Below, one piece after another: positions 327 to 8,330 of a stretch of DNA of 64,000 bases; the first letter of the stretch is position 1; every line of letters begins with the position of its first letter. Under the pieces are notes generated by a model that worked only from the letters and a program-made list of their open reading frames with translations, did no database searches and was not told where the DNA came from. The DNA comes from Macrostomum lignano (lineage: Eukaryota): positions 1 through 64,000 of the forward strand of contig NIVC01001901.1 of assembly GCA_002269645.1 (NCBI GenBank), written 5' to 3'. Both the position numbers and the translations under genes were made by a program.

Positions 327-1472
327 ATGGCCAACTCAGATTTACCAAGTTTCTACTCGTGAGTGACTTTTTTAACACCACTAAGTCTCAGTTGTATTAA
401 TGACGCAATATTAGCCGTAATAATATTCACAATAACAATTTTTTGCCAGCTACTGGGTGTGACGCAAGCTGCTTCCGAGGCGGAAATTCTGAGAGCTTGG
501 CGCAAGCGAATGACGAACTATCATCCCGACAAGGCTGGCAGCGAGGCTGAAGACATGGCCAAGCTTCTGAATCAAGCCAAATCTGTCCTGTGCGATAAAA
601 CCGAACGAATGAAGTACGACGAACGTCGAGATGAAGCAACTGAGGATTACGAGAGTGGCGCTGATTTGCCTCGATTGCCAACTGGAAAGACACTATCGAA
701 GGACCTCATGAGCAGAATCGCTGCTTGGAGGGAGAGTTCCGAGACGGCTCATGGAGCGCAATGCGACCCAAACGGATTCGCAAATAAGTTTTTCGAGGAA
801 ACTCGTCAAGCAGTTCTGGATCTTCAGGAGAAGCTACGGGTTATTAAGAGGACGAGACGGTTAACTCTGCAAAGCCCGGTTTTTATTGAGAGTATCGCGT
901 CAGGCGAGCTTTCAGAAGAACATTTAGACGATGAAGTTCTCACCGAAGCCTGCAAATGGGCGAGAGAGACGCTAGAAAAAACGCTGAAAAGGAATACGCA
1001 GACGAAAGTTCCACCAGTTCAAGAAGGCGAACTAGTATGCTGCTATGACCTTTCCAGCTTGAAGGAAAGCGAATTGAGAAAACTCATGGTGATATTGATT
1101 CCTCCATCTGGCTCCAAGCCACTGTCAAGCGACCCCGAAAAGATGCGCCAAAGACTCAAAGATGTGTTACCCAAGTTTCGCGTCGACGTTAATAGAGAGA
1201 GAAGGGGTATAAAGAAGTTTTTCCTCGGTGCTCGTTGTGTGGTATGCAGTGCCGAGAAAGATTTATCCGAACGAAAATGCTTCCTTGTCGCAGGAGCCTG
1301 TCACGAGTTCAGACCTGTGTGTCTCACATGCTCTAAGCTTGAGTCCAAGAAGACTGCAGTTGTGGGAGGAGTTGGCAGCGACGCCTCAGACAGGATTTGT
1401 AGCTTCCTACGTGGCGACAGGAATTGCAAGTATCGAAAGAATGATGCACAATCTGAAGATAAATCAGCCTAA
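327..1472 (+). CDS. 5' part of a large multidomain gene: DnaJ (J-domain) followed by a degenerate FYVE-like Cys-rich zinc finger
   Basis: ORF 363-1472 contains LLGVTQAASEAEILRAWRKRMTNYHPDKAG...LLNQAKSVLCDKTERMKYD (HPD at 522-530). The probable start exon is ATG327 (MANSDLPSFYS), followed by an AT-rich intron GTGAGT 359...CCAG 449; the phase is off by 1 nt. The C-terminus reads CVVC...C-H...CLTCS...RIC. Confidence 0.8.
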
Positions 1473-4400
1473 GTCTGTGGTCGAAGCAACATTCGATCCT
1501 TCAATCGCTCTCACTACAAAACTTTTTCTTGCTGCTTCGGCGCTGTGGCTAGCTCTACAGAAGTCTCAACGCAATGAGCATGACATTGAGTCACTGCAGA
1601 GCCGTCAAACTGAGCTCGTACTGGAAATTTCAGAAGAAAAAGATCCTGACCAAGAGCTGCGCTTGCTGTTACTCTTGGTAGAAAATGAAGAGTCTGCCTT
1701 GGAAAGTAATGAAAATTTTCGATCTTTTTTAACACAAGAAGAAGCCCGGCTAAAGCTGATAGTTGACTCGGCCGATCTGAACAACTCGATTCACATTGCG
1801 TTCTCACAGTCACCGAGAGACAGGTTGCTGCTACGCCAGGCTAGCAAGTCAGCTAAGCTGGCTGACGAAGCACTTGCTAAAGCGAAACTTGAGTCAAGAA
1901 TTGTAGGTCTATTTCTGAGAGGTGCAGGGATCCTCAGCTGTTCAGGTGATGTAACAGCTCAACTCAGAGGTATGAAGGACCTCACACAAGCAGTGCTCGA
2001 AGGATACTCTGTCTTCTACCACTCAGATTTGATATCATCTGTAATGCGTATTGTCTCTAGATTCGGAGCTCTTTGTGGGACATTTCCGGTTCATGCGCTG
2101 TTCCATTTAATCGATAACCCATGGTCAGACTGCCAGGGAATGTTCAGTCGTCGGACTGCTTCGTCGGAAACACCAGCCAAAGCACAAGTCCCACTATTCC
2201 CAGGTATTTACGTACCGGGACACAGCGTGCAAGCGTTGAAGAAGAGCGAGATCGCTATCTCCAGAAGACTCGAAAAGGGCCAAATGACGCCACTGCAAGC
2301 GGCAATGAGCGCACTGGACCTTGCCATGGCTTGCGAAACGCTTGCTGAGGTCCTCGCCTGTTTTCTTGAGTGTGTAGCTCTGCTTCTACGAGCTCTGGAA
2401 ATAGAGGAGTCGCTCTACCAGAGATATGCGCTCAAAGAAGCCATGTTTGAAATCGGGATCGCTTCAGTGAGCATTTGTCTCAACAACTTTTCCGATTCAG
2501 CTTTGTTAAACTATTTATTACGCTATGCCTTTTGCTTGCTGAGAGATGCCGCTACGAAAGTTGGACGACCAGATGATGTTGAACGGCTCATTTCGATTCT
2601 AGAGATAGTAGCCTTCACTGGTCGTTTCTCACCATTTGTGTCGCTGCCTCTGGTTCGTCCGTCTGAGTCGCTGGTATTTTCAAATGTGCTCAAAAAGTGC
2701 GCAGGTCAGCTTCTCTGTGGTTTGTCTCAGCCAGAAAATTCCTATTTTCTTGAACTACCGAAGAGTATCATAGCTTACCAGAGCTTGGAATACAGCATCA
2801 GCAGCTCTGCATTCACTGAAAGTGAGACACGCCAGCTTGAGCTCTTAACTGCACGTGAGATGCTTAGAGAGCAGAATCTGGACTTTAACAACGTAGCCGC
2901 CCTGATAAATCCATGCTATCTTGACGTTCCAGAGGACGGTTGGCTTGTACCAAATCAGACACTTGATTTTTCAGGATGCGGAAACACGTATTTGAGCATT
3001 GACAAGGTCATTTTTAACAAAAATACGTTTCAAATTTCTGTCGTGGGCAGCAAAGGGAATCTTGTCAGCGATTTCGATGTGCTGACTGGTCTGCTAATGG
3101 ATCATCCGGGTGTGGCTTTTAGCCTTGACAAGCCCGCCAATCTTCACGAAGCTCGATTCCACCCGTTTCAAAAGTACTGGAGTAGCCAACCAGATCTGCT
3201 TAAAGGAACTCCACTCCTAGACACTCTTTTCAACACGGACTACATCATGAAGCAATTCAGTTCCGGATTAGAGATCTGCAGGAAGCCACCGTTCGATCGG
3301 AGACCATTGCTTAACGGTAGGGGTCTGTTCGCTGGACTGCCAGATCAGCTGCGCTGGCTGTTGAGACCTCTAAGCGAAAGAGGTGGGCAAAGATCTCGCT
3401 GCAGCAGATTCTGGATTGCAGCCACAGACATGGAGATGAAAGTGGAGGAAACACCTGACACGATTGAGTTCGTGTTTGGAAAGGTTCGCTTGGAAGTCAA
3501 AACGCACAGGATGGTAGCTTCAATGGGTGGCGAACACCAGGACGCTGAGACTGATGATGAAGATTCTCCAGAGAATCAGTTCGCAAAGGACATGACGGAG
3601 GCCCTTCCCAGCTTGGGTAGATTCTTTCCCGAGTTTGAAAGACTAAAAGAGCTAACAAAGATTCCGAAACTCTGCCTGATTATTAAGGCCATGCACCAAA
3701 GCCTCGGAGCAATGACCGTTCGCCAGGAGCAAGTAGAGCAAATTCTTGATCACGAACGAGCTGTTAGAATGGAAAAGAGTTATGAGATGGCGAAAAATGT
3801 TCTAGAGACACTGGATCGAGCTGAATCAATCCCTGGTGCAAGCCACTATGATTGTTGCAATCTGGCCACTGATCAATTGCTAAGCCAACTAAACTTAAAT
3901 AAGACCGAGACTGTCCGTGCCTTGCGTAGGCGAGATGTCAGAACGCTCCAGTACCTGTTGGCTGACAGTCTGCCATCAAGCTCTGCTGCGGATGTTAGGC
4001 AACAAATTCAAGATTTGATTGACTCGAAGAGAAGAGAATTTAGGAACTGGAACAGCAAGATACAGCATAAGTTAAATAGTAGCTTGCATCAGAGGCAACA
4101 GAAGATATCCGATTGTGATTGGGCACCCGCAGTGCTGAGCGCTAGTTCGGACGCAACAACACGATCGACAGTATACGGCGGTGTCTTACTGAATCCCAAA
4201 TCAGTGCATTCCAGTTTTCGTATGGAGTTTCCCCCGGGAAGCACCGTTCACAAGGTAGTATCATTTCTGATTCTCGGCGAACTGAATAGCAAGCAGTTCG
4301 CCTCCACGCGGACTTTTGACAGTTTAGATTTAGGGACTGTAAACGAACTTCTTGGGAATAATTTTCCCGAAATGGAGAGTTCCTCTGACTCAGAGCTGGG

Positions 4401-4689
4401 CGGACGTTCAGGCCGTGACAATGAAGGCGCTACCAGCTCTGCTGACAACCAACCCAGAACATCTAAAAACGACCAGTTTTTGAATGATGAAGGAAACTGG
4501 TCTCACATCTTTTCTGACAAGCCCGGCCATGTGGTTCCACGAAACGCAAAAGAAGAATGGGAGCTGCGAAAAAAACTTGTCAGTATTCGAGATCTGGCTC
4601 TCAAAAAAGATCCGAGGTGCATTGACGCTTCTCAGCAATTTGTGCACGTCGAGGGACGAAAAAATAATTGTCGATTTATCTTCTACAAG
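1400..4689 (+). CDS. Long intronless continuation of the same gene (helical region, DUF1598-like region, acidic/Ser linker, start of a toxin-like module)
   Basis: The frame is open from 1213 to 4710 (ORF 1228-4710) with protein-like composition. Motifs: FSLDKP..HPFQ..TPLLDTLFNTDYIMKQFSSG, SRFWI, FAKDMTEALPSLGRFFPEFERLKEL. It ends at a phase-0 donor AAG|GTAAGA at 4690. Confidence 0.75.
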
Positions 4690-4791
4690 GTAAGAAAAGA
4701 TGCCATTTAAGTTTTAAAAATGATTGACTTTAAAGATTATGAAAAAGAAAATTTTAATGCATCTATATTTTTTAACAATGGTAATTTCAAG

Positions 4792-5085
4792 GACGAGAGG
4801 GAGACAAGTAGCGACGTACTGCACCTAGCCTGGTGGATAAGAATCGATGGAAACGGGCGCATCGTCGGAGCAGGCTGCAACACGGTCCTAGCCAAGGAGC
4901 GAATTCCACAGTTGTTTCTGTTCTTGCGACCCATACCAACTGGCGAAGCTTTGATGGCATTTTTTCTGAGGGAGAAGCATAAGCTTCATGGCAAGAAAAC
5001 AGACGTGGAGTTTCATGATCACCTAAGCACCATTCGGAAAGGTCTGATTAATCAAATTAATTTAGTTAATCAGATCAAACCATAA
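4792..5085 (+). CDS. Terminal exon of the J-domain/DUF1598-like gene
   Basis: AT-rich 102-nt intron 4690-4791 (GTAAGA...TTTCAAG), phase 0 on both sides, joining FYK to DERETSSDVLHLAWWIRIDGNGRIVGAGCN...QIKP-stop. Confidence 0.7.
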   Translation, partial: DERETSSDVLHLAWWIRIDGNGRIVGAGCNTVLAKERIPQLFLFLRPIPTGEALMAFFLREKHKLHGKKTDVEFHDHLSTIRKGLINQINLVNQIKP

Positions 5086-5546
5086 AGATACTAGAAACCG
5101 TAGATGGGCGTCTCGCCTATTTCGGGATTAAACTACTTTCAAATAGGCATCTGTTTGGAGTTTTTTGGATATATTTGTGAACCAAATTAAATTAATTTTT
5201 TTGCTGATTGTTATTTAATATTAGGATTCAACACTTGGTTTTGAGTGCTTAAATGTCTATGGCACTCGTGACCAAATATCATCGCTTTTGACGATCGGAA
5301 TGGGAATTTGGGCAGTCGGAACGGGACGCCATAGACATTCAAGCCAGGCCACAGATCTCACCCTAGTCATGGACTTAAGCAGTTTAGCAAAGTCTACTGA
5401 GGGAGGCTAGGCCATAGGCTATAAATTTGAACATTCAGTGTGGGAAAAAGCCATTCAAATTAAACGGGAATCGGACTGAGATTTTACAGCTCTCTGTCCC
5501 TCTCTCCCCTGTTTGTTCGTCTTTGGCCTGAAAGCGACCCCATTGA

Positions 5547-5870
5547 ATGGCGCCACCAATTCCTGTAGCAGATCGCCAGCGGCTGATTGATGCGATTGAA
5601 CAAGGGTCATCCATCGCAGGAAGCTGCAAGAATCTTGTAAATCAAGAAAAAAACGGCATTCCGAATCGCTGCCAACTTTTGACTTGATGGCAAAGTGGAA
5701 TCCCTTCCTCGCGGTGGTCGTAAATAAGGATTGTGCAAGGCCGATCAGGAAATGAGAGAATTCTTGGTTGAGAAACTCGATGAAAATCCTTTCCTGACGC
5801 TCAAGGAAATGTCTGAACTGCTGACTGAGCGCTTTCCCAAGAAGCCGCATGTTCACCTTGTTCTTCACTT
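5547..5870 (+). pseudogene. Truncated IS630/Tc1-type transposase N-terminal HTH region with stop codons
   Basis: Manual translation: MAPPIPVADRQRLIDAIEQG...KTAFRIAANF*LDGKVESLPRGGRK*...EMREFLVEKLDENPFLTLKEMSELLTERFP. PRGG and ENP.LTLKE are typical of IS630/Tc1 DNA-binding regions. No DDE domain follows. Confidence 0.65.
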
Positions 5871-5947
5871 TTAAATATTCCAGTGGCCCTGAGATATAAA
5901 AATACATTAAATTAGGCGAATTCCCGTTTTCAATGGCTTTTTTCCCA

Positions 5948-6503
5948 TTTTGATTGTCAATTCCACATGCTATGGTTGTGTATTCCCAAGCAGCCCGAGC
6001 CTGTGGCCTGGCTTGAATTGAATGTCTATGACGTCCCGTTTTGATTGTCAATTCCACATGCTATGGTTGTGTATTCCCAAGCAGCCCGAGCCTGTGGCCT
6101 GGCTTGAATTGAATGTCTATGGCGTCCCGTTTTGATTGTCAATTCCACATGCTATGGTTGTGTATTCCCAAGCAGCCCGAGCCTGTGGCCTGGCTTGAAT
6201 TGAATGTCTATGGCGTCCCGTTTTGATTGTCAATTCCACATGCTATGGTTGTGTATTCCCAAGCAGCCCGAGCCTGTGGCCTGGCTTGAATTGAATGTCT
6301 ATGGCGTCCCGTTTTGATTGTCAATTCCACATGCTATGGTTGTGTATTCCCAAGCAGCCCGAGCCTGTGGCCTGGCTTGAATTGAATGTCTATGGCGTCC
6401 CGTTTTGATTGTCAATTCCACATGCTATGGTTGTGTATTCCCAAGCAGCCCGAGCCTGTGGCCTGGCTTGAATTGAATGTCTATGGCGTCCCGTTTTGAT
6501 TGT
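5948..6503. repeat. 91-bp tandem repeat, about 6 near-identical copies, inside the transposon right end
   Basis: TGATTGTC recurs at 5951, 6042, 6133, 6224, 6315, 6406 and 6497. Confidence 0.95.
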
Positions 6504-6890
6504 CCAAATTCCCATTTAGATTGTCAAAAGCGGTATTGCAATCAGGATATATATTTCTATTGCATTAAGTAAATAATAAACGTCGTTTAATTCACATTCC
6601 GAAGGACATTCTAACCATAGACTATGATGAATTAAACAGCGTTTATCATATATGAACTTCGATTGATCCTGATTTCGAGGAGGATTATATGATATACCGG
6701 TATTAAACCACTTTAAAGCTCACTTTCAGGGAGGTTATTGACATAGATTTATTTTGCGCGATTTAATCGATCACTTTCCCGGACATTTTGCAAGGATTAT
6801 TCTATGTATCTAAATAAGCGAGCTTCTGCCTTCTCTTCCTTCGTGACTCAAGAAATTTCTTAATGAAATTTTGTCTATGGTAAGAATGTG

Positions 6891-7140
6891 GGGGCTTTGC
6901 CCCCACATCCCCAGCAGGGGCTTTGCCCCCACATCCCCAGCAGGGGCTTCGCCCCACATCCCCAGCAGGGGCTTCGCCCCCACATCCCCAGCAGGGGCTT
7001 CGCCCCACATCCCCAGCAGGGGCTTCGCCCCCACATCCCCAGCAGGGGCTTCGCCCCCACATCCCCAGCAGGGGCTTTGCCCCCACATCCCCAGCAGGGG
7101 CTTCGCCCCCACATCCCCAGCAGGGGCTTCGCCCCCACAC
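6891..7140. repeat. 25-26 bp GC-rich minisatellite GGGGCTT(C/T)GCCCCCACATCCCCAGCA, about 10 copies
   Basis: Seen directly; each unit contains a GGGGC-TTC-GCCCC palindrome. Confidence 0.95.
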
Positions 7141-8330
7141 CCCATTCCCAACTTCAACCATAGACATACAAGTATGGCTCCGGGATTTATCTGAATACAT
7201 CGGCTTCGGCTCTCGGGATTTAATCACATACCGACCTCAAACCCATAGAATATCTCATACATATCCTAGTTTTTGTCAAAATTACCATAGACAACACATT
7301 CCCGGCTCAGAATAGTACAATTTTTAACGATAAAATGAGCAATCGTATTTTATATGACTAGCCAATATGCGATCACGAGCCATTTAAGCATGCTTTTTGT
7401 GTTTAATGCACGCTTTTACACATTTATATCCTGTTACAATAAGCACCTATTGGAAATGATTCAAAGTTCTGTGGGGTTGGCTACATTCCAAGGGTGTCAC
7501 GCACATTTCATCTGTATATTTGATGGAATGCAGTTTACGACGTATGAAAGTATTTTTTCTCTAATAATAAGAATACACATACGAGCATATAGAGGGCAAC
7601 TAGCAAGTGGAAAAGCATTGTCGTTTGACCAAATAGTGCAACAATGAGTTTAACCATGCAGGAATGCTTTAGTCTCACTTGAAAATAAACTACCGTAAAC
7701 TCTACCGACAATGCTATACTATGTTTCTAGCATCAATGGGTCAAACAAATCAAATTTGAACTAAAAAACAATTGCTTTTTTCAGAATTCAACATTGTATC
7801 GGAACGAGCAAATTCGGAGAGGCAGTACACTGCCGGAGCTCGACTCTCGGCGGCTGCCATTGCTGCTGCGGTGGAGGAAGGTCCGGAAGGATACGTTTTT
7901 GTAGAGTAGCTGTCTGGCTGCCTTTTAAGCTCCTTTACACTCAAGTGCAATCCCATTTCTGTGCGGATTTTTCGGATTTGCTTCCACTAAAATAGACATC
8001 ACTTTTTTGTCTGTTAGCCGGGGCTCTAGTAGATTCCCTGTCATAGACTTGGTTGAGTATATAAATTTAGGACAACTTAGAGATCAAACTATTAGTTTTG
8101 AAGAAACATTTTTGCAATTTGGGAACTTTTTGTAACTTCCGGGATCCCGATGCGCATGATTGGTAACTTGTCAACGGCAATTTTTTTCATTTTTTATAGT
8201 TTTATGTGAAATAATTGCATATCCAATTTGTATTTGATTTTCATTGTTAGTATTATACTTAGAGATTTAGCATATTTAGATAACTACTAAATAAGATATG
8301 TATTGGTATTGCTTTTGATTCTTACAATCA

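Follow-up and report, generated by a model that had tools for sequence, protein, structure and literature searches.

A spliced module near the C-terminus of a Macrostomum lignano J-domain protein and its motif resemblance to a bacterial toxin-tip family

What is the small module encoded at positions 4498-4881 of a gene of the flatworm Macrostomum lignano, and does it descend from the C-terminal tips of bacterial polymorphic toxins, whose two best-conserved motifs it appears to carry? The question arises from a 64,000-nucleotide stretch of M. lignano DNA (assembly GCA_002269645.1, contig NIVC01001901.1, positions 1 to 64,000 of the forward strand), hereafter called the window, in which a long open reading frame (ORF) on the + strand holds the module. 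The original prediction matched the spliced peptide to the C-terminal pattern of bacterial Rhs/CdiA-type toxins and took the module for domesticated host DNA. We conclude that the module is genuine, being spliced from two coding segments that specify a small alpha+beta domain, and that its carrier protein is found only in M. lignano. That bacterial family is real, and on the sequence comparisons presented here the module cannot be filed within it. We favor, with a probability of about 55%, the reading of the protein as a lineage-specific Hsp70 co-chaperone that carries the module as a non-toxic specificity end, a role which we infer.

Two public M. lignano proteins share 97-98% identity with the long ORF, P0001 (PAA80559.1, 'hypothetical protein BOX15_Mlig017921g3', 1,549 amino acids) and P0002 (UniRef A0A1I8GVL3, 'J domain-containing protein'), on both of which Pfam PF00226 (DnaJ) is the sole annotation. 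The gene is already public as a hypothetical J-domain protein, and no annotation covers its C-terminal module. For P0001, the GenBank annotation (NIVC01) goes back to a transcript assembly from RNA-sequencing data, guided by the genome (PMC5730564). We analyzed the pieces of the window gene one by one and joined them across introns only. The first part of the module (4498-4689) opens with WSHIFSDKPGH, runs through a predicted long helix and predicted strands 1 and 2, and ends in FIFYK, where the long exon (450-4689) closes. A spliceosomal intron (4690-4791) then separates predicted strands 2 and 3, and the second part (4792-4881), DERETSSDVLHLAWWIRIDGNGRIVGAGCN, holds predicted strands 3 and 4 together with the second motif. 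The intron, of 102 nucleotides, is bounded by GT..AG, lies in phase 0, has a G+C content of 20.6% vs 47% in the flanking exons and holds an in-frame stop at which the ORF ends (4710). Translation of 4498-4689 joined to 4792-4881 gives WSHIFSDKPGHVVPRNAKEEWELRKKLVSIRDLALKKDPRCIDASQQFVHVEGRKNNCRFIFYK followed by DERETSSDVLHLAWWIRIDGNGRIVGAGCN, and the spliced product runs from WSHIFSDKPGH through the junction FIFYK/DERETSS to WWIRIDGNGRIVGAGCN; this junction is identical in both public gene models. The peptide, coordinates and intron of the original prediction are thus confirmed, both by translation and by gene models that splice at the same point. Two details need correction. The second motif, given as W-x5-G, actually reads W-x6-G-x-I-x3-G-x-N from its second W (x7 from the first). 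The module, which occupies approximately residues 1,340-1,440 of the 1,549, does lie near the C-terminus as had been said, but not at its extreme end, since the exon continues to 5041, another exon follows at 7785-7909, and about 95 residues stand C-terminal to GAGCN. Three short antisense ORFs of 79, 65 and 57 amino acids overlap the module on the minus strand (4408-4647, 4737-4934 and 4787-4960) and suggest no gene.

That this is host DNA and not contamination follows from the intron, from the four near-identical copies of the gene on M. lignano contigs and from the transcript-based models; of the earlier claim of a domesticated module, the host origin therefore stands, whereas the toxin origin, for which homology is not supported, is still a hypothesis. 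Besides the window copy there are three further public ones (L062-L064), on contigs of 95 and 531 kb, with 99.1-99.7% identity to it over exons and introns alike. All three keep the full 1,549-amino-acid frame (intact in P0001 and P0125), whereas the window is one nucleotide shorter at the exon 1 donor (~358), which puts exon 1 out of frame with exon 2, and two nucleotides shorter at ~1350, after which the J-domain frame meets a stop near 1475. Its ORF call (P0126, 343 amino acids) is accordingly a truncated J-domain piece. A frame broken twice upstream relative to every other copy, and a call that stops after 343 amino acids, could mean that the segment has lost its function, as part of a pseudogene copy in decay whose motifs are biologically meaningless. 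Both length differences, however, fall within short repeats (a run of G and a repeated AG), and miscounts in such repeats are frequent in long-read assemblies. An assembly miscount at ~358 and ~1350 is for this reason a live alternative to a real frame break. Furthermore, the other three copies are full-length and annotated from RNA-sequencing-guided transcripts, and the module itself is intact in the window. Against the most diverged copy (L062) it differs by three synonymous and no non-synonymous codon changes, whereas the rest of the long exon shows 11 synonymous and 19 non-synonymous changes (Fisher p = 0.067 vs the module). This comparison suggests that the module is a constrained, functional domain, and we consider pseudogene decay highly improbable. 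A 43-nucleotide GT..AG stretch (1207-1249) that could bridge the two frames of the window copy as an intron is absent as such from the public models, and we regard it as a coincidence. At 2515-2534, 12 of 20 nucleotides are substituted between the window (..NYLLRYAFCLLRD..) and L062 (..NYVSRHAFALLRD..) in a gene that is elsewhere ~99% identical; this cluster may mark a short stretch of gene conversion or of hypervariable sequence.

The J domain lies at the start of the long exon, within the segment 450-1350 (+ strand, frame 0; LLGVTQAASEAEILRAWRKRMTNYHPDK..), and includes the HPD motif (..NYHPDK.., in ..RKRMTNYHPDKAG..); it matches DnaJ structures of the Protein Data Bank (PDB) at E ~1e-7. J domains recruit and activate Hsp70, and the one in this protein would do the same. 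Since a J domain with HPD is the sole recognizable part of the protein, we propose that it acts by Hsp70 delivery: the orphan middle region and the C-terminal module may give specificity for a partner, a client or a site, and the protein would then bring Hsp70 to whatever its non-J part binds, with the module as candidate specificity or effector end. This arrangement, an N-terminal J domain and a large non-J part that ends in a small separate domain, is akin to that of J-domain co-chaperones (DnaJ/Hsp40 class C) whose non-J regions are lineage-specific, although no sequence similarity to sacsin or to the named DNAJC proteins exists outside the J domain. Sacsin pairs a J domain with a HEPN domain at its C-terminus, and as the HEPN fold occurs in RNase toxins too, it offers an analogy.

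Outside the J domain, the protein is an orphan. A whole-protein search returned M. lignano proteins only. The rest of the long exon 5' of the module (1351-4497, + strand), a middle region of ~1,050 residues, has no detected homologues outside M. lignano, and a search with 317 amino acids of it returned nothing, M. lignano paralogues included. Within this region, ~3000-3760 (..GTPLLDTLFNTDYIMKQFSSG...RFWIAATDMEMKV...FAKDMTEALPSLGRFFPEFERLKEL..) looks like a distinct domain of conserved type, for which a focused search found no homologue. An R-x5-H motif of the HEPN-like kind (FFLREKHKLH) was set aside, as chance alone should yield several in a protein so long and no all-helical domain surrounds it. 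For the module itself, no worthwhile match came from an exhaustive phmmer search or from searches against NCBIfam, PADLOC and PDB sequences. With phmmer, the 166-residue module found in 1.84 billion representative proteins only the M. lignano cluster and two others (P0003 and P0004), with no member of the toxin family, and the latter two proved on reading their sequences to be repeat artefacts. NCBIfam gave zero matches, PADLOC a single row at chance level (Type I specificity subunit, E 0.033) and the PDB sequences four such rows (E >=0.4). A single-sequence AlphaFold model of the module reached a mean confidence score (pLDDT) of 43. Its Foldseek comparison with PDB gave no E <0.18 and, at E 0.2-1, weak matches to NTF2-like carotenoid-protein domains, RelE and ketosteroid isomerase. 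An orphan by sequence with weak and mixed matches of a low-confidence model might also belong to some other known fold or family, e.g. a small alpha+beta RNase-like or ligand-binding one, in which case the motifs would be coincidental; such a family could be invisible to sequence methods, as a profile can be built from nothing but near-identical M. lignano copies. Nothing positive points to any particular alternative, however, and the profile statistics given below favor the bacterial family over random expectation, so that we hold this possibility to be improbable.

The bacterial family was sought with its second motif, W[VI]xxRNGxIxNGGxN, which we back-translated and scanned over 596 Gb of bacterial and archaeal genomes. 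The scan returned 61 loci (L001-L061) vs an estimated ~0.13 expected by chance. About 50 of them, those with an ORF reaching far enough upstream, also contain the first motif along with a shared core, the others being truncated ORFs or contig fragments. The consensus is HIFRxxxGHLxDTPxNRxLL...LGxDxxGNxWYA..DGxQxWVxVRNGxIxN[GA]GxN (alignments A1 and A2). The toxin domain mostly ends its ORF, which can be long; the carriers include 2,327-amino-acid filamentous-haemagglutinin-like proteins in Burkholderia (L040 and L048), an Rhs-type end (L027) and a HINT-bearing protein (P0056). In 58 of the 61 loci an ORF of at least 55 amino acids lies within 126 nucleotides of the toxin stop, usually within 25 nucleotides or overlapping it, and 44 short downstream ORFs (62-100 amino acids) form one conserved family (..EAYxAMFxFLExYYERTxSDdlGaLLg...ADPAxWxDW..), from which an immunity profile was made. 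As one conserved family of short ORFs directly follows the toxin domain, the two genes bear the hallmark of a toxin-immunity pair. The pair is widespread, occurring in Proteobacteria, Firmicutes, Cyanobacteria, Myxococcota and others (e.g. L006, 3746-5372, and L040, 769-7985). The pattern named in the original prediction thus corresponds to a real family of polymorphic-toxin tips, on Rhs-, filamentous-haemagglutinin- and HINT-type carriers and with an immunity gene downstream.

A search with the family profile found 226 members. Conservation is high, each residue of HIF-x4-GH being kept in at least 92%, and D, T, N and R of D-T-P-x-N-R-x-L-L in 98%, 96%, 92% and 98%, respectively; in all 131 members measured, 40-43 residues separate GH from W. 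Among the 120 matches listed, 119 have no Pfam domain at all and the one exception has HINT/intein domains only. Neither toxin nor immunity protein has a name in NCBIfam, a profile search of the PDB sequences found none related to the family, and text searches with its motifs found no matching entry in Zhang et al. 2012 (PMC3482391). The family model that AlphaFold built from a 120-sequence alignment has a pLDDT of 96, with predicted helices at 8-14 and 26-37 and four strands; Foldseek placed nothing in PDB better than E = 0.74, with Cami1/RelE-like proteins, XendoU and HigB at template-modeling (TM) scores of 0.33-0.38. The barnase-EndoU-colicin E5/D-RelE (BECR) fold is that of a group of RNases. 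Toxins of this fold share with the two models a general topology only, a small alpha+beta domain with an N-terminal helix and a four-stranded sheet, whereas RelE, HigB, Cami1 and XendoU are non-significant among the Foldseek matches of both models (E >=0.25, TM 0.12-0.38). The nuclease or BECR label is thus a presumed one even for the bacterial family.

How far does the flatworm module follow this family? Block 1, HIF-x4-GH, is present (WSHIFSDKPGH, 4498-4530), and WWIRIDGNGRIVGAGCN keeps W, I/V, N-G, I, A-G and N of block 2, with the blocks in the same order and, as in bacteria, towards the C-terminal end of a large protein. On the other hand, block 2 lacks R and the first N of the motif and is longer by one residue. 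After GH the flatworm reads GHVVPRNAKEEWELRKKL and has no counterpart of the near-invariant D-T, and its N and R can be aligned only with 5-7 inserted residues, and to different residues in different alignments. From GH to W the module has 67 residues vs 40-43. The best glocal alignment between module and family needs nine indels (eight insertions and the DT deletion) over 75 profile columns, and the module is 25 residues longer than a family otherwise invariant in length. Hence the match claimed earlier holds for block 1, for most of block 2 and for their order but not for DT or rigid length, and the profile statistics leave homology in the twilight zone. The carriers also differ, as the flatworm protein starts with a J domain at residue 8, has no Rhs, FHA (filamentous haemagglutinin) or HINT parts, continues for ~95 residues beyond the module and is encoded by a eukaryotic, intron-bearing gene. 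The immunity profile matched neither the flatworm protein nor any of 952 segments from the six frames of the window (best E 2.5), which is unsurprising in a eukaryote, and in G+C content the module does not differ from the remainder of the gene. A toxin-immunity fusion was also considered, as the helix after the module (..TGEALMAFFLREKHKL..) resembled ..EAYxAMFxFLE.. by eye, and was rejected when the immunity profile found no match there.

The statistics of this comparison have two sides. The family hidden Markov model (HMM) scored the 1,278-residue protein at 8.4-9.0 bits (E ~1e-4 in a one-sequence search) and aligned only the HIF..GH block; hmmalign likewise placed the first block and left the second unaligned. 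The same profile gives chance PDB matches of up to 13.8 bits, e.g. to interferon gamma and a lectin. With hhalign the probability was 34-43% in local and 23% in global mode, and a value of '91% probability' obtained with loosened gap penalties was disregarded, its statistics being uncalibrated. Shuffled versions of the protein reached the family HMM score in 2 of 20,000 cases and the score of the block 1 sub-profile in 4 of 20,000. For the block 2 sub-profile the best site in the whole protein is indeed NGRIVGAGCN, but at E = 0.26, a score reached in 1,424 of 50,000 shuffled 110-residue segments (2.8%). Among the 952 six-frame segments this gene is the top match of the family (E 0.082, the next at E 3). 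The single comparison of family and protein therefore exceeds chance, at P ~1e-4 to 1e-5. Because it was picked after the motif had been seen, a correction is needed: 64 kb offer some hundred coding windows of domain size, and the motif families open to comparison number hundreds to thousands, which puts the expected count of chance matches of such quality at roughly 0.1 to 1. Once every family and all the sequence that could be scanned are taken into account, the match is not beyond chance.

Several points nevertheless weigh against the co-chaperone reading. First, the co-chaperone role of the non-J part is itself inferred. Second, by sequence the two motif blocks that appear in the module are the best-conserved of the bacterial family and stand in the right order. 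Third, the low-confidence predicted order of a helix and four strands resembles that of the pLDDT-96 family model, with the motifs on equivalent elements. Fourth, a gap-tolerant glocal score of our own, global in the profile, reached 36.7 for the module, higher than in all 40,000 shuffles (mean 8.3, standard deviation 3.9, maximum 36.08), in 2,632 unrelated real windows (maximum 19.6) and with 1,500 column-permuted decoy profiles (maximum 26.7). Regarding the third point, the predicted helix of the module spans 36-56 and its strands 67-71, 77-82, 93-101 and 107-111; strand 3 bears W, the turn NG and strand 4 I..G.N. The family model has one more, short helix at its N-terminus, and the module model permits no confident superposition on it. 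The concordant secondary structure lends some added weight to descent.

Descent would make the module a strongly diverged offspring of the bacterial HIF-GH / NGG-N toxin tip, horizontally acquired in the Macrostomum lineage, fused to a J domain and later changed by an intron and loop insertions. It might then still work within the cell as an RNase-like effector that depends on histidines, for example in defence or cell death; alternatively, catalysis could have been lost and the module turned into a binding domain, like the toxin-derived domain of teneurin. Much speaks for this possibility: the bacterial family is real and toxin-like; H, I, F, G and H of block 1 and W, N-G, I, G and N of block 2 are retained; the profile scores are rare in shuffles and the glocal score is unreached by any null; no other of the 952 six-frame segments matches the family better; the predicted elements follow the same order, with most inserted residues at loops of the family model; and cases of polymorphic-toxin domains transferred into animals are on record (PMC3482391). 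The objections are that the comparison was made post hoc and its P does not survive correction for the families and windows scanned, that database searches in neither direction join module and family, that DT is lost, NR ambiguous and the module 25 residues longer, that the carrier is apparently an intracellular J-domain protein and not a secreted one of Rhs/FHA type, that neither an immunity gene (in the protein or the six-frame window) nor a compositional trace of transfer is seen, and that the module model has a pLDDT of 43 with Foldseek matches that are not significant. The animal precedents, teneurin/Odd Oz Tox-GHH, the CIDE nuclease and ADP-ribosyl cyclase (Zhang et al. 2012, PMC3482391), would be alike in that a toxin tip was captured by an animal gene and possibly inactivated. 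They differ in having significant profile or structural matches and, in teneurin, co-transferred Rhs/YD repeats, whereas the flatworm protein has no other bacterial-type part. We thus judge descent of the module from the toxin-tip family, in either functional form, to be possible but doubtful, and a toxin tip set on an Hsp70 co-chaperone scaffold, e.g. a chaperone-gated RNase for defence or cell death, to be a shade less likely again. A toxic or nuclease role of the module finds no support in its sequence, and the lineage-specific co-chaperone with a non-toxic specificity end is the reading that we retain.

The remaining parts of the gene, all on the + strand, complete this picture. The first coding exon of this Mlig017921-type J-domain gene (327-358) begins with ATG at 327 (MANSDLPSFY..), as indicated by the sequence, by tblastn of P0001 and by alignment with L062-L064. 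After the module, the remainder of its exon (4882-5041; TVLAKERIPQLF...HDHLSTIRK) is predicted to form a short strand and then two helices, with the donor at 5042. The last intron (5042-7784) spans 2.7 kb and is rich in repeats, with a 91-bp tandem array (6.2 copies, 99% matches), whose length varies among the gene copies, and a G+C-rich 26/51-bp minisatellite of ~10 copies (5943-6504 and 6891-7144). It also contains short transposase-like ORFs on the + strand (5547-5874; MAPPIPVADRQRLIDAIEQGSS.. and ..EFLVEKLDENPFLTLKEMSELLTERFPKKP..), which resemble remnants of a helix-turn-helix region of Tc1/mariner type. The last coding exon (7785-7909; ..EFNIVSERANSERQYTAGARLSAAAIAAAVEEGPEGYVFVE) ends in the stop TAG at 7907-7909.

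Altogether, the locus holds a Macrostomum-restricted J-domain protein in which ~1,450 residues have no assigned function. Its comparison with bacteria yielded, as a side product, a well-defined toxin-immunity pair that is unnamed in Pfam and NCBIfam and whose high-confidence predicted fold has no significant PDB neighbor. It also teaches caution, as a striking match of two motifs may be real as a motif and yet fall short of homology. If the toxin ancestry were true, the module would be another animal domestication of a domain of bacterial warfare, and an unusual one, as its tether to a J domain would suggest an activity controlled by chaperones.

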